The notes under the pieces are model-generated. The model worked only from the letters and a program-made list of their open reading frames with translations, searched no databases and was not told the DNA's origin. The position numbers and the translations under genes were made by a program. A stretch of DNA of 63,179 bases, the filler included, from Guillardia theta CCMP2712 (lineage: Eukaryota > Protista > Cryptophyta): NCBI RefSeq assembly GCF_000315625.1. It is 5 parts of 5 records of this genome, joined end to end, with 100 filler letters (N's around TTAATTAATTAA, not from the genome) between each part and the next. Parts side by side here need not be neighbours in the genome. Positions count along the whole stretch, not along the records: positions 1 to 26,633 come from NW_005434378.1; 4 more parts are not named here. The stretch is one strand, 5' to 3'. Within the stretch, counting starts at the first letter, position 1; each line of letters begins with the position of its first letter. Positions 1 through 22,848 of the stretch are shown piece by piece.

Positions 1-2444
1 TCGGTCACGTGTGTGTCACGTGACCGCAGGTGAGCCTGTCAGCCGGGTCACGGCCCCTGTCAGCCGGCTGACATGTCACGGGCCTGCTGACACGGTCCGC
101 TGACCGGTCACGGCCGCCCGGAGAGATCAGGCCCCCGGCCAATGTCCGGACACTTAGCCTCCTGGCGGGCCTCCAGGGGGTCTGAGGCGGGGTTGAAGGC
201 TGCAGTCGGTCTACTGACGGGCCCGGGCCGGCAGGATCCGTCCTAGAAACAGGGGGGGTCATAGGGAAGGTTTTTTCTTCCCCCCTGGGGAAGAAAAAAT
301 GTTCCCTAATGGGATCTGCGATATAAAAAAAGTCTTGTCTCGGTCACGTGATGTGTCACGTGACCGGTCAGGTGAGCCTGTCAGCCGGGTCACGGCCCCT
401 GTCAGCCGGCTGACATGTCACGGGCCTGCTGACACGGTCCGCTGACCGGTCACGGCCGCCCGGAGAGATCAGGCCCCCGGCCAATCTCCGGACACTTAGC
501 CTCCTGGCGGGCCTCCAGGGGGTCTGAGGCGGGGCTGAAGGCTGCAGTCGGTCTACTGACGGGCCCGGCCGGCAGGATCCGTCGAGAAACAGGGGGGTCA
601 AGGGAGGTTTTCTTCCCCCTGGGAGAAATGTCCTATGGGTTTTTGGATCTGCGATATAAAAAAGTCTTGTCTCGGTCACGTGATGTGTCACGTGACCGGT
701 CAGGTGAGCCTGTCAGCCGGGTCACGGCCCCTGTCAGCCGGCTGACATGTCACGGGCCTGCTGACACGGTCCGCTGACCGGTCACGGCCGCCCGGAGAGA
801 TCAGGCCCCCGGCCAATCTCCGGACACTTAGCCTCCTGGCGGGCCTCCAGGGGGTCTGAGGCGGGGCTGAAGGCTGCAGTCGGTCTACTGACGGGCCCGG
901 CCGGCAGGATCCGTCGAGAAACAGGGGGGTCAAGGGAGGTTTTCTTCCCCCTGGGAGAAATGTCCTATGGGTTTTTGGATCTGCGATATAAAAAAGTCTT
1001 GTCTCGGTCACGTGATGTGTCACGTGACCGGTCAGGTGAGCCTGTCAGCCGGGTCACGGCCCCTGTCAGCCGGCTGACATGTCACGGGCCTGCTGACACG
1101 GTCCGCTGACCGGTCACGGCCGCCCGGAGAGATCAGGCCCCCGGCCAATCTCCGGACACTTAGCCTCCTGGCGGGCCTCCAGGGGGTCTGAGGCGGGGCT
1201 GAAGGCTGCAGTCGGTCTACTGACGGGCCCGGCCGGCAGGATCTGTCGAGAAACAGGGGGGTCAAGGGAGGTTTTCTTCCCCCTGGGAGAAATGTCCTAT
1301 GGGTTTTTGGATCTGCGATATAAAAAAGTCTTGTCTCGGTCACGTGATGTGTCACGTGACCGGTCAGGTGAGCCTGTCAGCCGGGTCACGGACCCTGTCA
1401 GCCGGCTGACATGTCACGGGCCTGCTGACACGGTCCGCTGACCGGTCACGGCCGCCCGGAGAGATCAGGCCCCCGGCCAATCTCCGGACACTTAGCCTCC
1501 TGGCGGGCCTCCAGGGGGTCTGAGGCGGGGCTGAAGGCTGCAGTCGGTCTACTGACGGGCCCGGCCGGCAGGATCCGTCGAGAAACAGGGGGGTCAAGGG
1601 AGGTTTTCTTCCCCCTGGGAGAAATGTCCTATGGGTTTTTGGATCTGCGATATAAAAAAGTCTTGTCTCGGTCACGTGATGTGTCACGTGACCGGTCAGG
1701 TGAGCCTGTCAGCCGGGTCACGGCCCCTGTCAGCCGGCTGACATGTCACGGGCCTGCTGACACGGTCCGCTGACCGGTCACGGCCGCCCGGAGAGATCAA
1801 GGCCCCCGGCCAATCTCCGGACACTTAGCCTCCTGGCGGGCCTCCAGGGGGTTAGAGGCGGGGCTGAAGGCTGCAGTCGTTCTTACTGACGGGCCCGGCC
1901 GACAGGATCCGTCGAGAAACAGGGGGGGTCAAGGGGAGGTTTTCTTCCCCCTGGGAGAATGTCCTATGGGTTTTTGGATCTGCGATATAAAAAAGTCTTG
2001 TCTCGGTCACGTGATGTGTCACGTGACCGGTCAGGTGAGCCTGTCAGCCGGGTCACGGCCCCTGTCAGCCGGCTGACATGTCACGGGCCTGCTGACACGG
2101 TCCGCTGACCGGTCACGGCCGCCCGGAGAGATCAGGCCCCCGGCCAATCTCCGGACACTTAGCCTCCTGGCGGGCCTCCAGGGGGTCTGAGGCGGGGCTG
2201 AAGGCTGCAGTCGGTCTACTGACGGGCCCGGCCGGCAGGATCGGTCGAGAAACAGGGGGGTCAAGGGAGGTTTTCTTCCCCCTGGGAGAAATGTCCTATG
2301 GGTTTTTGGATCTGCGATATAAAAAAGTCTTGTCTCGGTCACGTGATGTGTCACGTGACCGGTCAGGTGAGCCTGTCAGCCGGGTCACGGCCCCTGTCAG
2401 CCGGCTGACATGTCACGGGCCTGCTGACACGGTCCGCTGACCGG
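1..2444 (+). repeat. 332-bp GC-rich satellite, about 7.3 tandem copies
   Basis: Near-identical unit (tcggtcacgtgatgtgtcacgtgaccgg...gatataaaaaagtcttgtc) recurs every 332 bp; shadow ORFs start at 368, 700, 1032 and 1364. Confidence 0.98.
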
Positions 2445-3588
2445 CATAGCGTTGTCGGGTCAAGGAACTTGCTGACAATTGGGATTTGTACCAGATCCAG
2501 GCGTTTTCCAGTACAAAATTGTGTGTGAGTAAAAAATCCAAGGATTGGAAGGTTTGAAAATCCATTTCCAGCCTGCACGTTCAACGGCAACCAGGGGTAA
2601 TTGAGAGCTCAGATAAGTAAACAATCGTTCCTATTTGTCTTTGGATAGGGTCACATAGCGCTTGTATAGTGGAGTAATGATTCGTACCAGAACCTGATGG
2701 GTAGGCGTGGTAGTATTTCAAATGATTCGAACCAAACGGACGCGACAGGGGGGTGGGGGGTAGAGGTATTGGTCTGGTACTGTAATGGGTACCTTATAAA
2801 ATACATTTAGCAGAGGGGGTCTCCCTCCCCATCTCCCTCCCCTCAACACTTGCGCATCCCTGTCCTTCCCTGTTCATGAAGCTCAGACTCTTGTCACACC
2901 TTCCCTGATGACCCTCAACTTTCTTTGACGCTTCTGTCTGCCTTGTCCTTCCCCAACATGCTGGAAACTCAAACTCTGAAACCATGCGCATGACTTGACT
3001 AGCACTGTGTTTCTCGGTTTGAATGCGGGAGGAAAAATGATACATGGAGTGCAACTAAGACGTTCATGTTTCAACCTCATAGATACAAGTAGTATTGCAT
3101 TGGTAAATGACTGTCATTTTACTTCTCATTGACACAGCATCAAGAACTTGCTTTGGATCGATCATTGCTTGGAAAGTGTCATTTTTCAGACAGAACTTCG
3201 AGTTTATCTATATTCTGTGTCCATCCACACGATCAAATCTGCTTTGATACACTTTTTTAGCAATTCTTAAGTTGAGCACATAAAAGGCCATGAAAAAGAT
3301 ACATGTTTGCAGACGCTCTCCTCCGCCTGATCCCCTCCTGCCCTCCACGAACCTTCTCTTCTCTTGGACTCCTGCTCCTCTACCATTCATCGTCCTCTCC
3401 TTTTGTGTGAGTTGCTCTCGGACTAGGGGAGGGGAGGAGAAGCCGGGAAGGGAAAGGTGAGCCTGGGAGGTATTGATATGCTGATCGCGAGAGAGTAGAT
3501 GCCAGAGGAGAGACGGTTTACTCAAGACCACTACCGAGGAAGGGAGGAAGGCGACGAGAGAAAGGAGAAAGCTTCGGGTAGAGACGGC

Positions 3589-3882
3589 TTACTTGATACC
3601 ACTAGCGATAAAGGGATGTTTCAGAGCCTCCTGTGCTGTCATCCTCGTGCGGAGATAGATGTCGAGGCAGCGGTTGAGGAAGTCCCAGATCGCATGTTTC
3701 TCCTGCCCTTGCATCCCGCATCCGCGCTCAGGGAGCTTGACAAGGTCCGCCATGTTTGCTTCAAACCGCGGGCATAGCTGAGATGCTCTTCCAATGGTCC
3801 GAACTGAATGGCATCAAGTTAGCAACCTCAGGCTTTTCGCCTCCATATCACCCTCATTCTCATCCTCAGGATAATAGAACTT

Positions 3883-3918
<36 letters not shown>

Positions 3919-4161
3919 AATTTTACCTCAACTTTGAGCTTGAAATCTTTAATAACATCCGGAAGGAGCGAGAGCTGGCCGTAGAATCATCAGAGGGCAA
4001 GCTGTAGCCGTTGCTCTTCGTTACTGGGAAACTCTTGCTCATTGACCCTGACTTTGTGCTGCGGCGTGATGAACTCGATTGACAGTGTCCTTTGGAAATA
4101 TCTTCTCTGCCAGCCCAAAGTCCACAAGCAAGTACTTGTTGTTCCTTCTGTCGTAGAGGAA
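3589..4161 (-). pseudogene. CDC7: Captured, truncated and frameshifted CDC7-like kinase fragment inside element 1
   Basis: Manual minus-strand translation gives FLYDRRNNKYLLVDFGLAEK (from 4161; Cdc7-type subdomain VIb-VII) and DFLNRCLDIYLRTRMTAQEALKHPFI..* (ending 3589; subdomain XI). A GT-AG intron at 3926-3804 contains (GTTGTC)n and a GCTAAC branch point. Confidence 0.75.
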
Positions 4162-4541
4162 GGATCAGTAGGGGTGGGACAAACAAACAAACAAAGCAAA
4201 AAGCAGTACGAGGACAAACAATCAAACCAACAATCATGGGTCAACAGTCCATAGGGTCAACAGGTTGACAAACAGACAAACAAACAAACGAACAGGTGGG
4301 CTCCGCTCTATTGAATACTTATTGAACAGGTGGATGCCTTTCCAGGTAATTGGGTAAATTTCCCGGGGCGGGCTTGATTTTTCCACTTCCATGGTTTGAG
4401 TGGGGATGAGGAGATTAGTCCTTTCAAATTTTCCGAAGGGGTTTTCAAAATTCCGAAAGTTTATCCTTTAATTTCAATATTATTTATTAATGTTCAAATA
4501 TTCAAAACATTCTATTGAAATTTTCCCGCCAATTGATCATC

Positions 4542-7147
4542 ATGCTGCCCCCACAGCGACAGATCACGACATCTCCTGCCCGCAATGCTCCCATCATCAA
4601 CTTCAAGGATCTCGACCTGTTGTCATCACCCAAGGTCCCTGGTTCAACGTGGTACTCTTCTTCATCTGAAAATTTTCTGGGTAGATTGATGTGTATGTTA
4701 TAGGTATGATGCGTTCATTGCCGCCACAGGGCCAGGGCATGGACCCCCTCCCTACATTTTCGCACCGCAAGCATACAAGTGGGCTTTAAGTGCGACTCCT
4801 GTATTACACGGTGATCACTTTCCATTGGATGCCCAAGCAATTCTGGGATTTCAGACAAGGGCAGCTCTGGAAGGCTACTTTGACAAGGATAGTAAGAGTC
4901 CAGACGTGATTAGATTACTCAACGACATGGGTGCCAATCATAACGATTTTTGGAGAAAATCTGTGCTGGGCAAAAGTTTGGCCATATCTGCTATACATGC
5001 CGAAAAGAATGAAGAGCTCAAGGCAAAAATTGCAAGTCTCGAGCACCAGATTAAAGTACTTCAACAGGAAGTCAAGAACTTGAAAGCTGCTAATGAATCC
5101 TCTCCTCCAAGGCCACGCTCTGCATCTACTATTGACTTCAGGGAAGTGATCAAGTCAGAGGAGCAATGCAACATTTGGGTAGAAGAATTGAAACCGTACT
5201 TTGAACGGTTTGCCAACCTCACAAAAGAAGTCACAGAAATAAACTATCTCCCATGCTCTGAAGAACATAAGGATGAGCTTTTCTATTATGCACTAGCGCA
5301 ATTGACTTACGGCAGACGTCTTGGACAAAAGAGATTGTTCAATTTTCATTCGTTCTGCAAGGGATTTCTTGGGCGTGAAGAGTTGAAAACAAAACTAAGA
5401 GAGACTTTTGACAACAACGCGAGTATAAAACGAATCTTTGTTCACGTGTGCAAAACCTCTCTTGTGAATCATATGGAAGATGTTAGCAAATCGATCATAT
5501 CCAGTGGAGTGCCTATTCGAAAGTTCGACAAAGTTTGTCACGCTTTGGGCCGCTCGATGTGTCCGAGTGTCAAAGCACTTTGCGCGAGAAACCGAGAATA
5601 TAAGCGCATGATTGAAGACGAACTTGGTGTGTTTCTGATGGAGAATGGAAGTGGGTTGGACTTAGAAAGGACAGTAGAATTGATACACGACGACAATGCA
5701 GAAGTTTTCAAAGATGCAGAAAACCTATATTTACATATTATTTTCGACGGTTGTAGAATAACTCAAACTGGTAAATATCAGGTATACTTCTGTGCAATAC
5801 TCTCACCGACGGAGGATATCACGGACCCTAGTATGTTGACGAAAGCGAAACGCCAGTATTCCTTCTGTGTGATCGACGGTCACGACACGATTGAAAATAT
5901 CGATGCAAATTTTATCAAAGTCTATGCACCTTTTCTTGCCGTGTTCTTGAAAGGATCAGACGGCGAGATTACACCTGGAATTCATATTTTTGAAGGCAGA
6001 GCGAAATTTGGGAGACAGCGCAGCCGGAACGGTGAAGTTCCGCACAGAATTATTCATGTGATCGGAGTGATTCGGAGCGACATGAGTGGGAGCTGGAAGA
6101 TAATGAATCATGGGGGACTCCATGATCCAATTGGGGCATGTTTCCTCTGTGATCAACCTTCTTGTCAAAGACATATTTATTATGAATTGGTGGTTGTTGA
6201 TTCAGATATTGCATGGGATGATATTCCGACAAGATTTCAAATGCACCAGGATACTTTTGCAATGGTGAATGGACTTCGCAAGGTAGATGGCAACGTTTTG
6301 AACTTGGAACAATATGACAATCTGGACAGTCTGGGCATCGATGTGGAGAACGTTGTGATCTGCTCCATGCACATGGTGTTTCGTGTATCGATTGCATTTG
6401 TCTTGTATGTATGCAACACCGCGAAAGAAAACAAAACGTTTCCTGTTGTGCAGAGAATGCTGGCAGAAATCAATATTCACGTCAAAGATTCAAGATCGTT
6501 TGCAATGCATGATATGCCTCAATTGATCGGTGAAAGTACCAAAAGGTTCCTCAAGGCATTTCCTGACTTGATAGTTGCTGCCCGGGCCAAAAATGCTGAC
6601 TTGTGGAAAGATCTCTGTGAAAAATGGGCATCAATAGTCTCAAGTGTTCTTCAGACGGACATTAAGAAAATGAGTCAAACAGAAATTGATTCTTTTGCTA
6701 TGCGATGTAATGATTTCTTGGCAAGATATGTCCTTCTTACAGACAGACTGGAATACTGCAGAGGGATCTACCTACATTTCCTTGCGGTTGGACATGTTAC
6801 AGATCAATTCAAAAAATTTGCAGAAAAGAAGATTCCTCTTGGTCTTCTGAACATGAGCGCGATGGAGAAGAGGCATTTGGTGAGTTCAGACTTACACTGC
6901 TTCATCATTTCTAAAACATTGAGCATTTGTGTAGGAAGTTTCTAAACCATCGTATCACCAAGGGGCAACGGCAGCATGTGGCTCAAAGCGAGGCAGGGAG
7001 CAGGAACCAAATGGCCAGGAAATGTCGTCTGACCAGAAGAGATTAGCCAGTACTATGATCTATCAGGCTGCAGGCTCCTTCAAGAACATATGTATGCTGT
7101 GCCGAAACATGCAACCTGTCTGTACATGTCGGCATCATGGCTCTTGA
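4542..7147 (+). CDS. DDE transposase of the CMC (EnSpm/Mirage/Chapaev)-Transib/RAG1 group; predicted exons 4542-4680, 4730-6879, 6935-7147 (about 833 aa)
   Basis: ORF 4825-6945 shows the motif order IIFDG ... RSDMS ... CFLC ... CSMH ... YLHFLAVGHV ... LGLLNMSAMEKRH. Two short GT-AG introns (49 and 55 nt) keep the frame by manual check. The last exon ends in CMLCRNMQPVCTC. Confidence 0.85.
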
Positions 7148-7285
7148 CCTTTAGTACTGTACAACTCATTGAACACGCTATGTTATAAACCTACTACCGT
7201 GTTATTCAGGAGGATAAGTCCAAATTTCTTCTCTTGATGCGCCTAACAGTACAAGTCTGTTGACCTACAAGGGATGAAGTCCATG

Positions 7286-8377
7286 TCAGCTTATGATGTA
7301 ATATTCATCAACAACTTTCATCACCTCAATGAATAAGCTTTCACTCTTGACAACAAAAAAAATAGGAAATTTGATGTAAATGGCAACACCTGACTCGCGA
7401 ATTACAAGAGGTGCATCAATTGTTGGGATTGCAAGATAATTTCGTTTGAACATCTCCTGCCTCCCAACTGTTTCAGGCAGAATCCAACAATAGTGCATCC
7501 CATTCTTACGCTTGCATTCGACTTGTCTCTGAAAAGCAAGCGGCAAGTCCTCAATAATTTGTCGCACGCTGACATTTTTGACTTCAAATCCACGTTTTCT
7601 CACGCTGGAAGGATACCCCAGCGCTGATCTGTATGCAAGCCAAGTAAACATTTCCCTCTCTATTGATACCCAGATTGTTGTCGCACATGGCGTTCGTAAA
7701 ACTTCTGAGGCAAGACAAGGTCTGAAATTCCCCCACCGTACAGATTCTCGCCTCCGATTGTTTTCAATAAACATGATCCAACCAATGACGAAGAAAAGTT
7801 GGCCCGACCTTGGTATATCGTATTCTTTACGAAATGCATCTATTCTTTCTGCTGCATTCTCTCGCGGGTAGGTATTTCCAGTGCGAGGCGTCAACCGTAA
7901 AGTAGTTGGAGCAGAAAATTGTGGAAATTCTATACAAGCCTGCTCAAGGATGTCTTCATGTGGCACCTCATCAGTATAGATAGATTGAAGGCACTGGTTT
8001 TCGCCGAGACCATCCACATATTTTGTAAATTGATGAGAATTGTTAAGCCCGCCCTCATGACTGACTCTTTGCAGCAAAGTTTTCCTATACAACCACACGA
8101 TAGTACATGTCTCTTCCTTGACATGCTTGATGATCCCTAGTTGCTCATGTGAGTCAATATCTCGAAAGATCACAGCGGTCCCTGCAGCGAACCGGTGATC
8201 GTCCGAGTCCTCCACAGCTCGAGAATGGGGCCTCTGGGTCTGACATATTTGCAGTGGGATCGTGAGTTGGGGCGGAGGCTGCTTGTTTTCAAGACGCTCA
8301 TCAGCAGATTCTCGTATTCTTGCCTCTCTTTGTCTTCGCCTAAGCTCTCCTGCAGCTGATGCATCACGTCTGCGCAT
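7286..8377 (-). CDS. Transposon accessory protein with a BAH-like domain (363 aa)
   Basis: Intact ORF convergent with the transposase. The segment AGTAVIFRD..QLGIIKHV..CTIVWLYRK..ENQCLQSIYTDEVPHEDILEQACI follows the BAH pattern (G.I ... V.W.YR ... NE.F.S...D.V....I). Confidence 0.65.
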   Translation of the reverse strand: MRRRDASAAGELRRRQREARIRESADERLENKQPPPQLTIPLQICQTQRPHSRAVEDSDDHRFAAGTAVIFRDIDSHEQLGIIKHVKEETCTIVWLYRKTLLQRVSHEGGLNNSHQFTKYVDGLGENQCLQSIYTDEVPHEDILEQACIEFPQFSAPTTLRLTPRTGNTYPRENAAERIDAFRKEYDIPRSGQLFFVIGWIMFIENNRRRESVRWGNFRPCLASEVLRTPCATTIWVSIEREMFTWLAYRSALGYPSSVRKRGFEVKNVSVRQIIEDLPLAFQRQVECKRKNGMHYCWILPETVGRQEMFKRNYLAIPTIDAPLVIRESGVAIYIKFPIFFVVKSESLFIEVMKVVDEYYIIS

Positions 8378-8806
8378 TGCAAATGCAGGGAGGAGGGAAG
8401 AGAGTGGCCTTTTCTTCTCCAGTCTGTGACTTGAAGTGATTCACATACCTCCGAGAGGGTAGGGTCCATGCTAATTTGACCCCGTCCGAGACCCCGCTAG
8501 CTCAGGGAAAGAGGTGGGTCCAAAGCATTGATGTTTGAACTTTGAAATGTAGACCATAAGCCGTTGTGGTACAAGTTTTCCTGTGGTACTTCAAATAGTA
8601 CCACCACAATTGTACCGTTGGTACAGATATTTTCTACCAGGAAGTACCCTACCCCCTCAAACAGGTCCCAACAAATTTGAATCAGCTCCCAGCCGTCTGA
8701 CCCACCCCAGACCCCAACTGCCATTTGCTATTCACATATGTGGAAGGATACCCCCACAGAAAACTATTGAAAACCAGAGGGGTCAGTTGAGAGCGACAAC
8801 GCTATG

Positions 8807-10406
8807 GGTCACGGCCGCCCGGAGAGATCAGGCCCCCGGCCAATCTCCGGACACTTAGCCTCCTGGCGGGCCTCCAGGGGGTCTGAGGCGGGGCTGAAGG
8901 CTGCAGTCGGTCTACTGACGGGCCCGGCCGGCAGGATCGGTCGAGAAACAGGGGGGTCAAGGGAGGTTTTCTTCCCCCTGGGAGAAATGTCCTATGGGTT
9001 TTTGGATCTGCGATATAAAAAAGTCTTGTCTCGGTCACGTGATGTGTCACGTGACCGGTCAGGTGAGCCTGTCAGCCGGGTCACGGCCCCTGTCAGCCGG
9101 CTGACATGTCACGGGCCTGCTGACACGGTCCGCTGACCGGTCACGGCCGCCCGGAGAGATCAGGCCCCCGGCCAATCTCCGGACACTTAGCCTCCTGGCG
9201 GGCCTCCAGGGGGTCTGAGGCGGGGCTGAAGGCTGCAGTCGGTCTACTGACGGGCCCGGCCGGCAGGATCGGTCGAGAAACAGGGGGGTCAAGGGAGGTT
9301 TTCTTCCCCCTGGGAGAAATGTCCTATGGGTTTTTGGATCTGCGATATAAAAAAGTCTTGTCTCGGTCACGTGATGTGTCACGTGACCGGTCAGGTGAGC
9401 CTGTCAGCCGGGTCACGGCCCCTGTCAGCCGGCTGACATGTCACGGGCCTGCTGACACGGTCCGCTGACCGGTCACGGCCGCCCGGAGAGATCAGGCCCC
9501 CGGCCAATCTCCGGACACTTAGCCTCCTGGCGGGCCTCCAGGGGGTCTGAGGCGGGGCTGAAGGCTGCAGTCGGTCTACTGACGGGCCCGGCCGGCAGGA
9601 TCCGTCGAGAAACAGGGGGGTCAAGGGAGGTTTTCTTCCCCCTGGGAGAAATGTCCTATGGGTTTTGGATCTGCGATATAAAAAAGTCTTGTCTCGGTCA
9701 CGTGATGTGTCACGTGACCGGTCAGGTGAGCCTGTCAGCCGGGTCACGGCCCCTGTCAGCCGGCTGACATGTCACGGGCCTGCTGACACGGTCCGCTGAC
9801 CGGTCACGGCCGCCCGGAGAGATCAGGCCCCCGGCCAATCTCCGGACACTTAGCCTCCTGGCGGGCCTCCAGGGGGTCTGAGGCGGGGCTGAAGGCTGCA
9901 GTCGGTCTACTGACGGGCCCGGCCGGCAGGATCCGTCGAGAAACAGGGGGGTCAAGGGAGGTTTTCTTCCCCCTGGGAGCATGTCCTATGGGTTTTTGGA
10001 TCTGCGATATAAAAAAGTCTTGTCTCGGTCACGTGATGTGTCACGTGACCGGTCAGGTGAGCCTGTCAGCCGGGTCACGGCCCCTGTCAGCCGGCTGACA
10101 TGTCACGGGCCTGCTGACACGGTCCGCTGACCGGTCACGGCCGCCCGGAGAGATCAGGCCCCCGGCCAATCTCCGGACTGACTTAGCCTCCTGGCGGGCC
10201 TCCAGGGGGTCTGAGGCGGGGCTGAAGGCTGCAGTCGGTCTACTGACGGGCCCGGCCGGCAGGATCCGTCGAGAAACAGGGGGGTCAAGGGAGGTTTTCT
10301 TCCCCCTGGGAGAAATGTCCTATGGGTTTTTGGATCTGCGATATAAAAAAGTCTTGTCTCGGTCACGTGATGTGTCACGTGACCGGTCAGGTGAGCCTGT
10401 CAGCCG
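8807..10406 (+). repeat. 332-bp satellite, about 4.8 copies
   Basis: Same unit as 1-2444. Confidence 0.98.
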
Positions 10407-12802
10407 CATTACGTTCGCTTATAGCTTTAGTTAATTCTCGATCCTGTCCTTCTGGTACTAATCATGGACACGGCTCTAATTGCAATTTGTACCAGTCCTT
10501 CCCCCCCTGATGGCGCCTGGGGGTCTTCAGCCCTTGCCTGGAGTAGACCCCACCCTCACTCTCCCATGGGAAAAGAGTAGGTCGGGTGGGCGACTTGGCT
10601 GGGGCAAGGGTAGGTTGTGAACCTTTTATTCCAAGTATTTGCATGCAGAAATTTGTATCGGCGGCGTGCTATTCTTAGATTCAAACTGTACTGCATGACG
10701 ACAATAAAATCAATTCTACACGCCTTCGTGGTACAAGAATAGTACCGAAAATCCTATCGACCCACCCATGCTTTTCTCTGTTGGATACAGGAGGCATAAC
10801 CCCTGGTCAGAGGCGTGTATTCAAAATTTGAACTTTAACGTAAGGTACCCACCCTTGCTCATGTGTCATAATTCCCTAAAACAGGAGGGTGGTCGATACG
10901 GCACTCAATCTTGGGATCAGGGGGTGGGTGGTAAGGAATCCCCAACCCATCCCTCCCTCTCGATGCATGATGAATGTTGCCCATCCAGCGACCATCAGGC
11001 TACTGAAAGATGCCAAGACCAACATGGTGACAAAGGTCAAACATGAGAATCAAAGATGGTGGGTTTGAGTGGTATGCATGCTCACTGTGCAACTCTGATA
11101 CTTTAGTGACAGATCCTGCTTCCCGGCGAGCAGTCATCGTGCATGGATCAGGATGCCCAAAGCTCTGCCCTTTTCAACGCTGCACTTGCACATATTACAT
11201 GTGGTGATGCACTCAGGTTGGCATTGCTACTCCACATACAGGTTGATGACAGACGTTATATTGTCTAGATTGTTTAGAACCCCAATTCCAGCTTGAACAA
11301 CATTGTTGAAGACGTGCAAACTGTTAGCGGCAATCTGTTTCTCAAAAACAGATCCCATCACGAATCACGGTGAGCTGAGATCAAGTGAAGATTGATCTTC
11401 TAATGTTTGTGTATCAGGTAAGCATCGTGCATCCACATGAACAAGCAACACAGCATTTTTTTCCTTGGCACCTTCCTTCCTAGCAGAACAATGAACACAT
11501 GTAAGATATTACATGCTCGTGACGATATCGACAGCAGACAAGTTTTACGACAAAAGAAAATTATGTAGGGATGATCTAAGTGTATCGAATACTTGCTGTT
11601 GGTGCTCAACATGTGGAGAAAAGACGATTTGAATGAATTCATGACAAATCATGACAGTGGATCACTTCTGAAGCAACGTATCTCAATGTTGCATACATAG
11701 CTTGACTTCATATCCTTACATCGTGAGAGTTGACAACCTGTATGGAGTGAGCTTTTCTGCGTCACATCATGCTGAGATCTGCATGCAACTTTCCAGCGCA
11801 GTTGCAGAGTCATGTGCACAGGAGTTCTCTTGCAAGTAAACTAATTCCAAATCATGCTTAATGAAATGCGTACCGTCTGTTGATGCCTTGACCGAGAACA
11901 ATCGTGTTACAGAGTATTGCTACTCGCTGCATGCGAAGCTGCTACTGTCTACAACACTCTAGAGTTCTGAACATCATATCAGTCCACAGCATGCAGGTTG
12001 CAAGGTTCCGAACGAACCGCGCTTCAAAGCAGGGCCATGAGCTTTGAATCATGCTTGATAGAACACGTACACTCAGCTCAGTTCATGCTTTCGTGACCCT
12101 AGTTGGATGTTCATACACCTTGCCAATGCCCGTGAAACATGTTGCCTCTCCCATTCAAATGTATACTGTAAATCTGAGGCACAAAATTTCTAACATCAAA
12201 TATCTTGAATTATGCAAAATCAAAATCCTTGATTACACTATGATGAGGCAAGAGCAGGATGCTCGTTGTCCCATCTTGTTTGTGAGGGCACGAGTGAAGG
12301 TTGAGCTGCTTTGACAAACAGCACTGGATATCTAGTGCAATACTTTACATCTCAAGCATTTGTTTATTGATAAAACATAACATTGTCGACTATGCGAATG
12401 AAAAATCATCACAGCAACACTTGGATGGTGCTTGATTCTGAACTTGCAAGATTAGATTACGATAATGATGATTGTATTCACAAAAGCAACACAACGACCG
12501 TGTTATCAAGATATCTCATCGACATTAACTTCGAATCTTGATGGTCTATCCTTCTTCGTCATTGATTAGCGTTGTGCATATCCCTGCACCATCGCGAGAG
12601 GGCTGAAGGGAGGGGGGAGGGGCTCGGGGGGTCTACCATCATAAAATGCTGGACTCTTAAAAGTATTGTAATTTGTACCATTAAAACAAATAAATTAGTA
12701 TTACAGGACCCACCCCTGTGCATTTCCCTCTTCAAACTCTACCACGCCTGTATCAGAGCCCCACAGGAAAAAGAACCCCAAAACCAACAAGCGAACGTAA
12801 TG
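10407..12802. mobile_element. Non-autonomous or decayed 2.4-kb TIR transposon (element 2)
   Basis: Perfect 14-bp TIR CATTACGTTCGCTT (10407-10420) / AAGCGAACGTAATG (12789-12802). 2-bp CG duplication (10405-10406 / 12803-12804) with the satellite in phase. No long ORF. Confidence 0.93.
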
Positions 12803-13785: not shown

Positions 13786-15279
13786 ATGAGAGTACGATCG
13801 TTTTTGGCATTACTTACGGTCGCATACATAATCCCAGCTTGCGATCTGTATCTTGGGTGGGACCTCAGATTGAATAGATTTCGACGTCTACAAAGCATCA
13901 AAGTCAGAAATTTTGTTGGCTCATGCGTCGCGCCCAACAAAAGCACGCTTATTGAAATCAATCACTGGTCGGATCAATTCCTTGCCCTTCAACATGTTTG
14001 CATCAGTGAGTCCGGAACCCGGAAAGTGCTTCACATGTTTGATTCCTTGGATCCAGTATGCAGCATTGCTGCTACCATGAAGATTGGCAAAGCAGCAGCG
14101 GACTTTTTTTCGCAATTCAAAAAAGCTTACGTGGCTTGGGATTCGGACATTTCATCTTTTTGCCCATCTTGTACACCATTTCTTGATGTTGTGATAGAAT
14201 TTCACGAGAATATCACCTTCGACGTATTCGTTAGGTCAATGGTGCAGACATCATATTCCCTGGTGAACGGTACATCGTTTCTAGCTGAACCCCACCATCC
14301 TGACAACAACTTTCACCTTCTGAACGATTTAGTCTTTCCTTTGTTGGATGATGCTATCAAAAGTGATTCAATGCATTTATCTCACAGAACACTCTTTCTT
14401 TTGCACGGGTCACGTAAGCGGTATATGAAACGAGCTTTGTGGTATGAAGTTTTACATCATTGGTTCACTATCGTATATCCGTTTGAACTTTCTCTGCGGC
14501 AAACAGGTGTCATATGCCTGGATAGATTGATATGGGCACAAAGCCGTTTCAATCAACCCTTTTACACGCTGGTTGGAGGGAGGTTCGGTAGATTGAATCG
14601 ATGGAGAGGAATTGTTTCAAATATCCGAAGAAAGATCCTCATTTCTTGGGGGATTCGTTGGTTGCAGGAATCGAATCAAGTGCACATGTTAAAGAACCCC
14701 AATTTGACTTGGGTAACACGACCTTGTGAAAAACACCGACCGAGATGTATGATCAATGAAGGTGATCTGATGTCTACGCTTGGCAATCATTTTTTTGTCA
14801 CTGAATTGTCTTTTAAATCTCAAAGTGATCGATCGAAACAGTTGTATAGATTGTTAGAGCAGCTGTCCTCGACACAGATTCTTGCGGGTGTACATGGGGC
14901 TGGATTGACCAATGCTGTTTTCCTGGAGAGGGGAAGTATCTTATTAGAGGTCAAGGAAGTTTCAGAACGACACAAAAAATTATTTTTGAACGTTGCAAAT
15001 CATGGAGATTTATCATATTACATATTTGATGCTGCTGTTTTTCACCTCAAAGGAGCAGGAATTTGGCTCGACAGAGCACGCATGCAGAGATTAGGGATGG
15101 ACTTGCACTCAATCTGGAAAACACATGTTCATTCCAGTCCTGGCAAGGTTGATTGCTTGTTTCCACAGTATCTGAATCGCGATTCGAGACTCAGTCTGAG
15201 TAACGAAAGTAGCTGTTATTTAGAATTAATACAGGGCAATTGGATACAATGCGCACATTACAGCCCTGATTGTCCCTAG
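13786..15279 (+). CDS. Glycosyltransferase family 61-like protein (EOGT/POMGNT2-type), intronless
   Basis: N-terminal hydrophobic signal/anchor; NNFHLLND and ILAGVHGAGLTNAVFL motifs typical of GT61/DUF563. Confidence 0.85.
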   Translation: MRVRSFLALLTVAYIIPACDLYLGWDLRLNRFRRLQSIKVRNFVGSCVAPNKSTLIEINHWSDQFLALQHVCISESGTRKVLHMFDSLDPVCSIAATMKIGKAAADFFSQFKKAYVAWDSDISSFCPSCTPFLDVVIEFHENITFDVFVRSMVQTSYSLVNGTSFLAEPHHPDNNFHLLNDLVFPLLDDAIKSDSMHLSHRTLFLLHGSRKRYMKRALWYEVLHHWFTIVYPFELSLRQTGVICLDRLIWAQSRFNQPFYTLVGGRFGRLNRWRGIVSNIRRKILISWGIRWLQESNQVHMLKNPNLTWVTRPCEKHRPRCMINEGDLMSTLGNHFFVTELSFKSQSDRSKQLYRLLEQLSSTQILAGVHGAGLTNAVFLERGSILLEVKEVSERHKKLFLNVANHGDLSYYIFDAAVFHLKGAGIWLDRARMQRLGMDLHSIWKTHVHSSPGKVDCLFPQYLNRDSRLSLSNESSCYLELIQGNWIQCAHYSPDCP

Positions 15280-16380: not shown

Positions 16381-16849
16381 TATATATACTGAGGCGGGCC
16401 CGCAGGGCCCGCCTTACAAAAAACTCGTGACGTCGGGAGCCCCACTGCAAACATACCCCCAGATCCCCTCCCACCTTCCATCTAAGGTCATGGAGAGGCT
16501 CATTGGCCTCCATCTAGACTGATCTGATACCTCGCCTTGTGTCATCCGACTCATATATATACTGAGGCGGGCCCGCAGGGCCCGCCTTACAAAAAACTCG
16601 TGACGTCGGGAGCCCCACTGCAAACATACCCCCAGATCCCCTCCCACCTTCCATCTGAGGTCATGGAGAGGCTCATTGGCCTCCATCTAGACTGATCTGA
16701 TACCTCCTTGTGTCATCCGACTCATATATATACTGAGGCGGGCCCGCACGCCTTAGAAAAAACTCGTGACGTCAGGAGCCCCACTGCAAACATACCCCCA
16801 GATCCCCTCCCACCTTCCATCTGAGGTCATGGAGAGGCTCATTGGCCTC
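16381..16849 (+). repeat. Third satellite, about 172-bp unit, about 2.7 copies
   Basis: tatatatactgaggcgggcccgca...gtcatccgactca repeated near 16381, 16554 and 16725. Confidence 0.93.
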
Positions 16850-16856
16850 AATCCAG

Positions 16857-18202: not shown

Positions 18203-19331
18203 AATTATAAATCGATTTATAAAACAGATAAAAATTATGATTTATTCGCAAAAGTTGTCTCCTCACGTTTCATTACAATTAAGTGCATGCGTCGATTACT
18301 TGGCATTGTCTGAGGTGAAGCTTCCTCCTATCAGGTGCTTCAACACCCTCCTTTGGCTCTTGTGTGCCGATGCCAGCATTGTTACTTTGCCGCGCCTCCA
18401 TTGACGGTGTCAGGCTTGTCAAATTTGACTATGCCTTTCAAATGACCTGCTGCGGTTACAAGCAAAGAAGTGTGGCTCAAGTGCACAGATGCTTAGAGCC
18501 TCGGAATGCATCCCTGGAGAGGACAGCAACAGCTACAATAAGGACGACGTAGGAGAATCATGAAGAAGACAGCAAGAACTTAGGACTCGTGGATGGCAGC
18601 AGGAGATAAGCGAGTCAGCTTATATCAGTCCACGACAGGACAGCAGATGACACGGTGGCAGGATATGGCTACGCTCAAAGGGAGATTGGAAGTATCACCC
18701 CTGAAGTCATGGACATCGGAGAACAAGGGGTCTGATCAAAGAAGACCGTGGCAGTACTATCATGATCATCTTAGCGGAGGACTTACAAGGGCAACGCACG
18801 AGACCACCTCCAAGCTTGACTCTAGCGGAGACACAGGACCTGTCAAGGTCAAGGGAGCAGCTACATCAACTTCACAGAGAGCGTTGGATGGGAATCGAAG
18901 ACCTCGTCATGTCAAGCCTATGACTCTTTCTCAGGGAACCCTCAAGGTACGGAACCAGGCCTCGGACCGGTCGAAGAATCATATTGCAGTCGGTGCTATC
19001 ACTGTCTACTTCGGGTGTCATTGCCACTGTGTCACCGTCTGTGGAGAGAAGGTTACTGGGAACTTCAACAACCCCTCCTTTCTGTAGCCAAGAGACGCTA
19101 CCCCTGGCTCCTTCCTGGAAGCTATAAACCTTTCGTGTGTGTGCCACGATTGTTTGAGACGTCTTTGTGTGCGTCATCTTGTCTTGTGTGTGTGTGTGTG
19201 TGAAAGAAATAAAAGAGAGTTAGATCTCCTTCTGTTTCACCGCTTTCCCTCTTAGTAGAAAAATCCAACGTTAGTTCTTGTTGAACTGCGCTTGAAGGTC
19301 CTCTCGAAAATCTTCGAGGTGTGACACACGC

Positions 19332-20141
19332 ATGAATACCACATGGCGAAGCGTAACAAAAGATGGTGACATGGAGAACGATGAAGGTAAATGTACCAGT
19401 ATAAACACGATCATTGCCAATTACATCGGTATCTTGGAGAAAATTAAAGAAAGGAACCAGGCAACATTCAAGGTTCTCAATAAAGCGATCGAGTTCATTA
19501 TGGAGCTTGAAAATCGTCTTTATAGAAGACTAAACATCAAGGCGGCCAAGGAAGAGCCTAAAGTACTCACAGAAGCTCACGATAGATTGAAGCACAACAA
19601 GGTCAGGGCTTGTCTGACAACGGTGATACAGAATGAGCTTGAAAGCACAGACAACATCTTGCTTATCCCACTCGCTGAAATTTTCGACGGATTTGATGAG
19701 CGAAACCAGCTCGGAACCATCGTGAGTATCGTGGACGATGACGAGAGAACGGACAGACAAGAGCGCCGCTATAACCCAGACAACAACCCTATCACCAGCC
19801 GGTACACGTATATCCTTTCGAGAATCAAGAAGAAGTTTGTCCAACTTCGACGTGCGGCACGCAGTGTTATCGACAACATGTATCAGGTGAAGCATTATGG
19901 CATTGACGGCATAGTGATCAGGTCTTACCAAAGCTACCAGAAAAGCATCAAGCCGCACACCCCTCTGGCACCGGACGACATCCTTGCCACGAATGAGTAC
20001 GGACCCGCCACAGTATTGGTACAGCTTTGGAATTTCTACGATATGAAAGGCAACAACGCGGTAAAGGAATGGCTGTCCAAGTACATCACCGCAAGCATCC
20101 GTCATCACCCACGGGTTAAAGAACCTTTTTGTCCCCATTGA
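19332..20141 (+). CDS. Hypothetical protein (269 aa), possibly retroelement-associated
   Basis: ATG-initiated intronless ORF with protein-like composition; no motif recognised. Confidence 0.45.
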   Translation: MNTTWRSVTKDGDMENDEGKCTSINTIIANYIGILEKIKERNQATFKVLNKAIEFIMELENRLYRRLNIKAAKEEPKVLTEAHDRLKHNKVRACLTTVIQNELESTDNILLIPLAEIFDGFDERNQLGTIVSIVDDDERTDRQERRYNPDNNPITSRYTYILSRIKKKFVQLRRAARSVIDNMYQVKHYGIDGIVIRSYQSYQKSIKPHTPLAPDDILATNEYGPATVLVQLWNFYDMKGNNAVKEWLSKYITASIRHHPRVKEPFCPH

Positions 20142-20150
20142 GAAATACGA

Positions 20151-20726
20151 GTGGGATACAGGCGGTTTCCACAACTACCTGCTACGGTACAGTCCACGGT
20201 CGTTCTGTACACCAAAGAGCTTGTCATGCACACGTCACAGGCGCTGAGGCAGAAGGCCGTTCCAGATCAAGTGAACAAGACGCTGCTTTGTGTCTACATC
20301 TATTTGAAACATACAAAAGATCTACGTGCTGTACCACGACAAGATGTACATGAGCCCGCAGCAAGAGTTTTACCTGTCGTTCATACTGAAGAACTTCCTA
20401 CCCATATCCGGGTTCAGCCGTGTTGCGATACAGCAAATGCAATGAACATAATGAGGATCTTCGAGCACATGATTTGGTCGACGGTGAATGACAGGGAATT
20501 GGACCGTAACACCCGCCGGCTCGAGAAGTTGTTCCACTATCACGCGACGATCATGAGGCAAAGATTCTATGAGTACAGCGAGTACACCATCAACAACATA
20601 CCAAGCATCGTCCAACGTGACACTCTAACACAGGATAATGCCGATATTTGGAGCTGTGATGAACATGCACCCCCAACGTGCGAAAGAGCGCATCCCAGAA
20701 CTGGGATTTGGACTCTTATTAGTTGA
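20151..20726 (+). CDS. Hypothetical ORF (191 aa), possibly a continuation of 19332-20141 after a stop codon
   Basis: Same reading frame as the upstream ORF, starts 10 nt after its stop, non-ATG start. Confidence 0.3.
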   Translation: MGYRRFPQLPATVQSTVVLYTKELVMHTSQALRQKAVPDQVNKTLLCVYIYLKHTKDLRAVPRQDVHEPAARVLPVVHTEELPTHIRVQPCCDTANAMNIMRIFEHMIWSTVNDRELDRNTRRLEKLFHYHATIMRQRFYEYSEYTINNIPSIVQRDTLTQDNADIWSCDEHAPPTCERAHPRTGIWTLIS

Positions 20727-20776
20727 ACACCACGGAAGGTCAGTTGGAATGCAGATTCGTTGGCGACCCACGTGAC

Positions 20777-21045
20777 TAGCCATCTTGCGAGCCGTGGAGA
20801 CAGTTCTGGTTGGGTGCTGAGCCTCACCAAACTGTGGTGATCGGTTCTTACTTGGAAGCGCCTGCCTTAGAGGTAGTAGGCGAAATGTTTCAAACTCTCC
20901 TTGAGCGCCAATAGCTCGCGTTCATATGTAGAGTAGTTGCACTCTGCGGCAATTAGTTTCCCATAGAATGCAATCGGGTATTCAGTGCCGTCTTCATCGC
21001 GTTGATGCAAGGCCGCCCCCATTGCAAGGTCGGAAGCTGTCGTAG
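20777..21045 (-). pseudogene. Ty3/Gypsy pol RNase H relic
   Basis: Manual translation: TTASDLAMGAALHQRDEDGTEYPIAFYGKLIAAECNYSTYERELLALKESLKHFAYYL*GRRFQVRTDHHSLVRLSTQPELSPRLARWL. This is the Gypsy RNase H signature with one stop codon. Confidence 0.9.
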
Positions 21046-21498
21046 CGCTGCTTTAGCGACTGCAAGGCTTGTGAGGTTGTGTGTACAACAGTGCTGCGTG
21101 CCAAGGTCAGGAGAGACGTGCCGGTGACGCCATGTGTAAGAACATAGAACTCCCAATTGTACGGTATCAGTATTTCTAGGACAGATAGTCTAATACGACG
21201 CTCTCTCTTCATTTATCGTAGTAAATGTTTTGGATAGCACAAAATTACCAAGTTTTGCTCCATCGTGCGTGAAATTACGGTGCTGTGCAAGTGACAGGAA
21301 GCGAGCTTCAAGTCCTATCGAACAGCAGTAACCTGCCCCTCTGGTTAAGTTTTAGAAAGACCATACCTAAATGGTATAATGGGGTAAGTAACACAACGAA
21401 TGTGATATGAATGCCTTGGACTTGTGAACCTGACGAAATACAAGCATGTAAGAATATCTTCAGAGAACATCAAGCACAAAAATTTCATCAGCTTTCTA

Positions 21499-22521
21499 TC
21501 AACATGAGCTCTTGTGTCTTCGAAAAACCATGGATGTACGTGTAAACCAATCATAATTGTCAGAGGCCTTGCGGAACATTCGTTCACTCCGAAAATCTCT
21601 GAAATACTTCAGATCTCTAAAAATTGCCTCAATGTAGTCGTTGCCATGATTATTGATGTGATTATGACCACCCTGTCCAAGAATTGCCCAACTCAAAACA
21701 ATTCCCTTGCAATTGTGCCGATGCAGATTTCGTATTACAACACCCTCAAAACGACTTGGGACGTGTTCCCCTACCTCTAACGACACTACCCATTCCTTAA
21801 TGGGAAGATTGAATGGGATCGTCAAATCTAGAAATCGGACAAAGCCATTGGTGTACTCCTGTACATTGCCAGCACCGTCAAATGCCTGATAGTCAAGTTT
21901 GGGAAAGAATTTCAAAAGCTCACATCCATATTGTCCAACACCAGCTCCAAAATCGTACAGTGACGTGATATTCTCAGTTAGAATCAAACGTTTCAAAGCT
22001 AGAAGCACTTGCTGTGATGCTTTTACATGGCGGGTAGGGCCAGGGATAACGTATCCTTCAGGAGTGACAATACTCCATAGCTTTCCAGGTTGTAAACACC
22101 ATCCGCCTGTGCCTGACACACTGTCATTGAGTCCAAGGCAAAGCTTACGAGATGCTGAATGACGATCATTCAACATCTTTTCTAGGAACGAATAAAGCTG
22201 TGGAGAAACTTCAAATCGAGCACTGTCTTCAATGTCGGAAATATTGTAATGCCTTGGACAATCGACCCTAGTTTGAGGGCATCCACATTTTGTTGGACAA
22301 CCCAATCCATACTCGGCAGGTCCAATCAATTTCTCGTTTATTTCCTTCAAATGCTTCAAGGAGTCAATCGTCGTACTGTAAAATTCACTCTTGTACACCA
22401 GAAAACGACTTCCATGCTTTGGCAATTTTGAGAACGCAAGAATCAGACAGAATGATACAATGAAAAAAACTGGAACAGAGTGATTACGTGCAAACCTAGA
22501 AGTAATATTGCCCGGGACCAT
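21499..22521 (-). CDS. Membrane-anchored class I SAM-dependent methyltransferase, intronless
   Basis: N-terminal TM (VPVFFIVSFCLILAF); motifs LYDFGAGVGQY, AFDGA, VVSLEVGEHVP and LSWAILGQGGHNHIN. First ATG at 22521 (the ORF track starts at a GTG, 22590). Confidence 0.85.
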   Translation of the reverse strand: MVPGNITSRFARNHSVPVFFIVSFCLILAFSKLPKHGSRFLVYKSEFYSTTIDSLKHLKEINEKLIGPAEYGLGCPTKCGCPQTRVDCPRHYNISDIEDSARFEVSPQLYSFLEKMLNDRHSASRKLCLGLNDSVSGTGGWCLQPGKLWSIVTPEGYVIPGPTRHVKASQQVLLALKRLILTENITSLYDFGAGVGQYGCELLKFFPKLDYQAFDGAGNVQEYTNGFVRFLDLTIPFNLPIKEWVVSLEVGEHVPSRFEGVVIRNLHRHNCKGIVLSWAILGQGGHNHINNHGNDYIEAIFRDLKYFRDFRSERMFRKASDNYDWFTRTSMVFRRHKSSC

Positions 22522-22848
22522 GGCACCAGTAGAGGTTTTATGGATGTAGGCTTGAATTGCGAAGTTTAGAGGGTCCTGTTGTTCGGGCACTAGGGGTTTT
22601 CAGGAAAATCCAAGCAAGTAGCATCCAGCCAGTAAGTTTGAATTTTCCGATTTCAAATTAGGCGAGATTTGAGAGGACGCATGAAAGTCAACCTAAATGC
22701 ATAGGAAGCACCTGTTACGGAATCCCCCTAAAATTTGTACCACGAAATGTTTTTTTTGGAACTGTCGATATATTCATTTTCCAGTAACTTGGGCGGGCCG
22801 AAGCCCGTCGCCAGATTTGAGCCGGCAATGGCAATGATGCCTGAAGGT

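Follow-up and report, generated by a model that had tools for sequence, protein, structure and literature searches.

Relation of the Guillardia element to described transposons

Among DNA transposons, the CMCT clade (EnSpm/CACTA, Mirage, Chapaev, Transib and Plavaka, together with ESTA and Lanisha) is characterized by a DDE transposase with C(2)C and H(3-4)H motifs, by CA..TG termini and by target-site duplications (TSDs) of 2-5 bp (Kojima 2025, PMC12730594). The element studied here is an intact DNA transposon of 6,362 bp from the cryptophyte Guillardia theta, found at positions 2445-8806 of a 63,179-nucleotide stretch (the window: five parts of assembly GCF_000315625.1 joined with filler), where it lies inside a satellite with a 332-bp unit. 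Its transposase has the same DDE core, with a C(2)C and paired histidines situated after the second D and before the E, and the element shares both the CA..TG termini and a TSD within the 2-5 bp range. The paired histidines are present in all the aligned rows that reach this region, with a spacing of 5 in G. theta and of 4 in the metagenome and green-algal relatives. This lineage differs from the rest of the clade in having a fixed convergent partner with a predicted BAH fold, encoded by a second open reading frame (ORF2), and a LysM-like insert in the transposase. None of the named CMCT groups has a Pfam family that scored above the cut-off. The element most likely represents an undescribed CMCT lineage that extends across cryptophytes and green algae and is marked by the conservation of its BAH-fold partner and, among the G. 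theta families, by CDC7-like cargo.

An earlier note on this DNA had set the ends and the TSD apart from those of Transib and RAG elements and had placed them closer to EnSpm/Mirage. The first part stands: Transib elements have a single gene, CAC ends and a 5-bp TSD, whereas the window element has two genes, CAT ends and a 2-bp TSD; within the lineage, CAC ends occur only in the green-algal relatives and CAT ends in G. theta. The second part is not distinctive, as CA..TG termini with a 2-bp TSD are ordinary across the CMCT clade. ProtoRAG and the other RAG-like (RAGL) elements, including AanRAGL of Aureococcus (PMC9435367), share with the window element a RAG1-like fold (predicted here), two genes and a cysteine-rich C-terminal tail, and the tail-to-tail gene order is also that of ProtoRAG. 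Nevertheless, their partner is a kelch RAG2-like protein, their TSD is 5 bp long and their terminal inverted repeats (TIRs) are bipartite and resemble recombination signal sequences, in contrast to the BAH partner, the 2-bp TSD and the simple 13-bp TIR found here. Concerning EnSpm/CACTA, neither the window transposase nor its relatives had a Transposase_21/TNP2 match in Pfam; CACTAC ends are seen in Cymbomonas and Klebsormidium, as opposed to CATAG/CATTA in G. theta. Chapaev elements produce TSDs of 3-4 bp rather than 2 bp, and the sole trace of them was a weak DUF1280 match in metagenome relatives (best E 0.0075).

The nearest named lineages are Lanisha, ESTA and Plavaka. The fungal ESTA elements, which are RAG1-like by HHpred, share the 2-bp TSD (PMC12730594), but they duplicate only TA, while the window lineage duplicates GG, CG, GA and AA. 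The fungal PlavakaB elements share the 2-bp TSD and the CAT start (PMC12730594), but their termini are CATCA..TGATG instead of CATAG/CATTA. Unlike the window lineage, both have fungal hosts and TET/JBP cargo (PMC12730594). PIF/Harbinger elements also need a second DNA- or chromatin-binding protein, as may be the case here, but they use an unrelated IS5-like transposase and a Myb/SANT partner.

One alternative, unlikely but the least so of those weighed in this study, is that the window element belongs to Lanisha or to a Repbase family filed under EnSpm or another name, so that the lineage would be known and its BAH gene simply unnoticed. Lanisha, from Ceratodon, is RAG1-like by HHpred, has no BLAST match in Repbase and has homologues in Klebsormidium nitens (Maumus, McDaniel, Carey 2020, bioRxiv 10.1101/2020.07.03.163634), a species in which the profile of the window transposase also reaches a protein. 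Yet Lanisha elements measure 10-12 kb, with TIRs of 35-40 bp, contain 5-8 ORFs and are described without mention of a BAH gene (bioRxiv 10.1101/2020.07.03.163634), against 6.4 kb, a 13-bp TIR and two genes plus a remnant in the window element; the Klebsormidium relative measures 13.7 kb. The two are set apart by description, not by sequence. Also counting against the assignment are the absence of mosses, ferns and conifers among the 30 nameable profile matches and the lack of any G. theta family in the CMCT tree of Repbase families (PMC12730594). The claim that this architecture is undescribed agrees with the literature covered: no BAH-encoding TIR transposon, no such Guillardia element and no CDC7-carrying TIR transposon was found in a paper search that left most subscription journals and Repbase Reports outside.

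The element, its two genes and their conservation

The perfect TIRs and the 2-bp TSD that had been read from the sequence delimit the element (Table 1). The likeness of the TIRs ends at base 14, and the neighboring satellite units display the empty site with a single GG, so exactly this GG was duplicated. The boundary is real, because other copies of the left end have unrelated flanks. The TIR pattern has 57 exact matches in the assembly, compared to 3 for a reversed control, and 12 TIR pairs outside the window enclose non-autonomous copies of ~2.8 kb (median identity 97.6%). Since these copies are so alike and share the left part of the element, this group has recently been mobile. Repeated GTACC-type motifs cluster near both ends of the window element. 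In the lineage as a whole, the TSD is 2 bp in four elements, with two exceptions that have no matching TSD, and 24 insertion flanks revealed no sequence motif and no base preference except a lean to C/G.

The spliced transposase has 832 amino acids (aa). The intact, spliceable frame that had been proposed is borne out, as are its predicted introns, of which RNA contigs confirm two; contigs from three studies match the transposase with zero mismatch (the RNA nature of the runs was guessed, and the skipped pieces show splice ends). Since the assembly contains no other near-identical transposase copy, the window copy is probably the transcribed one. A raw-read run from 2026 (X14) placed only 24 reads on the element; therefore, its expression is not general. 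The protein matches GUITHDRAFT_149210. Its motifs (D308, D419, C439xxC442, M515-H516, Y649-x-H651-x5-H657 and E681, counted from the frame at 4825) include the D, D, CxxC, H, paired H and E that are conserved across 25 relatives. The CxxC..CxC tail, which is in frame only once intron 2 is removed, recurs in the sister family P0002. The insert that follows the CxxC contains a LysM-like module, and Pfam LysM was matched in the Klebsormidium relative just below the cut-off (E 9e-4).

The protein lengths derive from joined exons, while searches and folding were carried out exon by exon, with the transposase tail and the last 20 residues of ORF2 outside the folded models. Pfam and PDB sequence searches with both proteins and their alignments returned nothing except coiled-coil noise, and word-index homologue searches returned only G. 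theta-like proteins. The AlphaFold model of the transposase, built on 20 family members, matched Transib, RAG1 or amphioxus BbRAG1L in all of the first 49 Foldseek rows (best E 5e-5), HzTransib being the best match. The top six VIA matches were likewise of the Transib/RAG1 type (Z 8.7-10.5 over 305-334 residues, rmsd (root-mean-square deviation) 14-20, low TM-scores). This comparison, which had been suggested as a check, supports a predicted RAG1/Transib-like fold.

The stop codons of ORF2 and the transposase are 54 bp apart. The earlier description of ORF2 as a tail-to-tail frame of 363 aa was right about the arrangement and wrong about the length, which is 371 aa because the gene has an intron. 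Its BAH-like segment is also borne out by modeling: residues ~50-220 are predicted to adopt a BAH fold, a lead that came from a language-model search as well. BAH-domain proteins occupied all 50 rows listed by Foldseek and nearly all rows of an Atlas structure search, and 19 BAH entries preceded the first other fold in VIA, the best being the BAH domain of Arabidopsis ORC1b (Z 10.3, rmsd 3.0, 111 residues). There was no propeller among the structure matches, no fold match for the C-terminal alpha/beta domain and no Pfam match for G. theta ORF2. ORF2 is under purifying selection: close copies give nonsynonymous to synonymous rate ratios (dN/dS) of 0.19-0.20 (p about 1e-5), and comparisons between families show saturated synonymous sites. 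Selection has been long-lasting on the transposase gene as well as on ORF2. One copy (L002, C8:1178368-1179970) retains the right end; its BAH gene is intact, 97% alike and with a dN/dS of 0.20, and no transposase match was found beside it.

The pair formed by the transposase and the BAH-fold partner is a trait of the lineage. The G. theta genome has 26 transposase loci from at least 12 families, 23-39% identical to the window transposase, and a convergent ORF2 homologue accompanies 23 of them; the unpaired loci include one N-terminal piece and one deletion that retains the first codons of ORF2. Profile searches also gave matches in Hanusia phi, Cymbomonas, Klebsormidium, Mesostigma and Coleochaete, together with numerous metagenome proteins. 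Among the freshwater-metagenome loci with at least 1.5 kb downstream, 21 of 33 have a downstream partner (20 convergent), a count that is not dereplicated and is partly circular, since 15 of the loci built the profile. The profile of these partners aligns with ORF2 from the BAH region to the C-terminus (hhalign E 7e-6 and 1.4e-5, probability 80-84%). Thus, the question of whether related elements lack ORF2 is answered by its retention in both G. theta and the metagenome relatives. TIR scans of the metagenome contigs gave no convincing ends. Two loci from metagenome assemblies (L061 and L068) were rejected as other organisms, since they match G. theta copies at 99.7% and 91%. By eye, one downstream gene (L065:6212-6838) has a Tudor-like segment and another (L133:8718-9458) a Tudor-like followed by a BAH-like segment, for which Pfam gave no confirmation.

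In green algae, two Cymbomonas copies define an element of ~6 kb that has CACTAC/CACCAC ends and includes a convergent gene; one of the copies is flanked by a GA duplication. In Klebsormidium, the transposase lies within a 13.7-kb element with CACTAC ends, flanked by an AA duplication, whose boundary comes from one copy. A convergent gene in the same element codes for two DUF7081 (MBD-like) domains and has a BAH match below the Pfam cut-off (E 7e-4). A quick tree, built with no outgroup and without the named CMCT families, displays clustering by host only.

Table 1 Coordinates of the element, its genes and the flanking satellite in the window
Feature	Position	Strand	Basis or remark
332-bp satellite array, left flank, 7.3 units	1-2444	+	
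Left TSD copy, GG	2443-2444	+	Comparison with the empty site in adjacent satellite units
Left TIR, 13 bp, CATAGCGTTGTCG	2445-2457	+	
Left subterminal region, 809 bp	2445-3253	+	90-92% identity with ~20 non-autonomous ~2.8-kb copies
Decayed C-terminal half of a CDC7-like kinase gene	3589-4162	-	Frame broken
Transposase exon 1, putative ATG at 4542	4542-4651	+	RNA contigs begin at 4587-4589
Transposase intron 1, 52 nt, GT..AG	4652-4703	+	RNA contigs, runs X1, X5
Transposase exon 2: coiled-coil N-part, RNase H-like core, LysM-like insert	4704-6879	+	
Conserved motifs in exon 2	D 5746, D 6079, CxxC 6139-6150, MH, YxHx5H 6769-6795, E 6865	+	
Transposase intron 2, 55 nt, GT..AG	6880-6934	+	RNA contigs, runs X1, X5, X7
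Transposase exon 3, CxxC..CxC tail and stop	6935-7147	+	
ORF2 exon 2 and stop	7202-7264	-	
ORF2 intron, 60 nt, CT..AC on the plus strand	7265-7324	-	RNA contigs, runs X1, X5
ORF2 exon 1: basic N-helix, BAH domain, C-terminal alpha/beta domain	7325-8377	-	
BAH-fold domain, residues ~51-220	7718-8227	-	Predicted structure
Right TIR, 13 bp	8794-8806	-	
Right TSD copy, GG	8807-8808	+	
332-bp satellite array, right flank, 4.8 units, resuming in register	8807-10406	+	

Satellite insertion and the role of the BAH-fold partner

The 332-bp satellite amounts to ~479 units (~0.18% of the assembly) and forms long arrays on a few transposon-rich contigs (C105, C114, C137), which makes it a candidate for a centromeric or heterochromatic repeat of G. 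theta. That it might be a small-RNA gene array, a target of the Dada type, was considered and rejected, as it had no Rfam match. Five of the 20 left ends of the window family lie in this satellite, an enrichment of about 115-fold even without the window copy; satellite collapsed in the assembly would inflate this ratio. A second CAT-ended element occupies the satellite at 10407-12802 of the window, with a 14-bp TIR starting with CATTACG and a CG duplication. It has no coding match and about ten near-full copies in the genome at 98-99%, and it is probably a non-autonomous member of the same lineage.

By analogy with described systems, we lean narrowly towards the interpretation that this is an autonomous cut-and-paste element of the CMCT clade in which ORF2 is an indispensable partner connecting the transposase with chromatin, with a soft bias to repeat-rich regions. 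If the analogy with RAG1 and Transib holds, the zinc-containing DDE transposase (CxxC and two histidines) would bind the short CAT/CAC ends, excise the element and insert it with a 2-nt stagger. ORF2 would occupy the place of RAG2L in ProtoRAG or of the Myb/SANT protein in Harbinger, its C-terminal domain binding the transposase and its BAH domain docking the complex on chromatin. The outcome would be a soft bias toward repeat-rich, gene-poor chromatin, with no site-specific targeting.

The chromatin target in this scheme depends on the BAH domain. BAH domains of the AIPP3/EBS type read H3K27me3 through an aromatic cage of Tyr-Trp-Tyr plus His and Asp (PMC7718874). In a comparison with AIPP3 Y149/W170/Y172 made by eye register, not by structural superposition, one of the three positions is kept in ORF2: only the last Tyr is invariant across families, while 13 of 15 rows have R at position 79 and only 2 have W at position 95. 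As the cage looks incomplete, ORF2 is unlikely to be a methyl-lysine reader of the AIPP3 type, and the earlier suggestion that it reads a histone mark is no more than a hypothesis. Cage-less BAH domains, such as those of Sir3 and yeast Orc1, bind nucleosomes; in the manner of the Orc1/Sir3 domains, a nucleosome surface or a chromatin protein would be a likelier target than methyl-lysine.

The same missing cage positions can be taken to mean that ORF2 is a structural cofactor that binds the element ends or the transposase, its BAH domain being a protein-protein surface with no chromatin role and the satellite enrichment only a survival bias. The GTACC-type motifs near both ends, the mostly dispersed insertions and the long terminal repeat (LTR) elements that share the satellite neighborhood are consistent with this explanation. 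Nevertheless, nucleosome binding by cage-less BAH domains and the strength of the enrichment once the window copy is set aside count against it, and we regard it as improbable. Alternatively, ORF2 could be an anti-silencing or self-regulating factor, comparable to Mutator VANC or to the fungal TET/JBP cargo, with no part in cutting or target choice. The BAH, MBD-like and (by eye) Tudor-like modules of the partners are typical of silencing machinery, the C8 copy keeps ORF2 intact where the transposase is lacking, and fungal CMCT elements carry anti-methylation cargo (PMC12730594). Yet TET cargo is patchy and swaps superfamilies (PMC12730594), whereas the tail-to-tail position of ORF2 is fixed over transposases that are only 20-25% alike, and for this reason ORF2 looks more like a core subunit. 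Thus, the anti-silencing role also seems improbable, to much the same degree as the structural one.

Several observations weigh against the interpretation of the element as a member of a widespread lineage with a chromatin-linking partner. Fifteen of the 20 left ends lie outside the satellite, and copies of an unrelated LTR element sit directly beside the satellite arrays on C137, so that the enrichment may reflect survival in the gene-poor DNA of a gene-dense genome. On these two counts, the steering of integration to the satellite by ORF2, as proposed earlier, is no more than a hypothesis. No partner was found at 12 metagenome loci with at least 1.5 kb downstream. The Klebsormidium and Cymbomonas partners show no significant alignment with ORF2 and may, for that reason, be separate captures, and the other Cymbomonas copy has no matching TSD. 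The transposase model is modest (pLDDT 67, pTM 0.42) and its global superposition poor. No EnSpm, Mirage or Chapaev transposase appeared among the structure matches; to our knowledge, none has been solved, and so the fold search is unable to rank these groups. Finally, a third CAT-ended element (window 23839-26493, 20-bp TIR) has no TSD; since its flanking satellite is out of register as well, a flanking deletion is suggested.

If the favored role of ORF2 as a chromatin-linking subunit is correct, it would have a bearing beyond Guillardia. RAG1/Transib-like transposases gained a chromatin-sensing second subunit once on the way toward V(D)J recombination, and the BAH partner is apparently a second, independent solution. 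Intact, transcribed and clonable algal copies make it possible to test whether accessory subunits evolve for target choice, for escape from silencing or for complex building. The lineage also contributes a transposon group with at least 12 families, so far unannotated, to the genome of a model cryptophyte.

CDC7-like cargo and other features of the window

The kinase remnant of the window element, which the earlier note did not mention, covers the catalytic loop to the DFG motif, an insert and the domain end, the APE segment being missing. Its best match among solved kinases is human CDC7 (E 1e-23, versus 2e-18 for CK2). A sister family, with the TIR CATAGCGTTGCCG, carries the C-terminal half of the kinase in about a dozen copies that are 99% alike, and a rearranged copy at C252 has the N-terminal half fused to a transposase tail inside the TIRs. 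Both halves are joined in one intact-looking frame of 483-495 aa at C307:7658-8614, C389:7618-8574 and C276:31370-32326, placed ~2 kb past the transposase gene and the BAH gene of a third family. At the DNA level, kinase copies are 76-90% alike, much more so than the transposases of the elements that carry them, and hence the kinase was captured repeatedly or passed between families; fungal TET genes likewise pass between transposon families (PMC12730594). The dN/dS between two kinase copies is 0.35, a value that selection either on the cargo or on a host donor may explain; the host gene could be the copy at C64 or that at C14. The CDC7-like kinase is probably an optional cargo of G. theta families, a cell-cycle kinase moving with transposons.

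Kinase sequence recurs at C252, C101 and C64 as well. Between families, a 60-bp stretch at the catalytic loop is 95-97% alike, compared to about 80% in its surroundings. At L025, a chromodomain-bearing LTR copy interrupts the kinase cargo, and at L030:260-640 a left end belonging to the kinase-carrying family sits 380 bp within a left end of the window family.

A bolder interpretation joins the kinase to the BAH domain: the elements would form a widespread algal superfamily whose RAG1-like transposase independently gained a BAH reader that directs integration to satellite or origin-rich chromatin, with a working CDC7 co-opted in Guillardia, so that the Orc1-like BAH and CDC7, as two modules borrowed from replication initiation, would tie transposition to replication. 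We consider this improbable.

The remaining features of the window lie apart from the element. An LTR retroelement remnant at 18910-21060 has an LTR at about 18910-19327, gag-like frames and an RNase H-like end; LTRs related to it are concentrated on contigs that carry the satellite. An intronless frame of 363 aa on the minus strand (21499-22590), methyltransferase-like by eye and with no Pfam match, lies among satellite and transposon pieces. An intronless glycosyltransferase family 61 gene (13786-15279, Pfam E 6e-9) occupies a non-satellite block between satellite pieces and may be the cargo of another mobile element. A separate tandem repeat with a 173-bp unit is located at 16381-16853.

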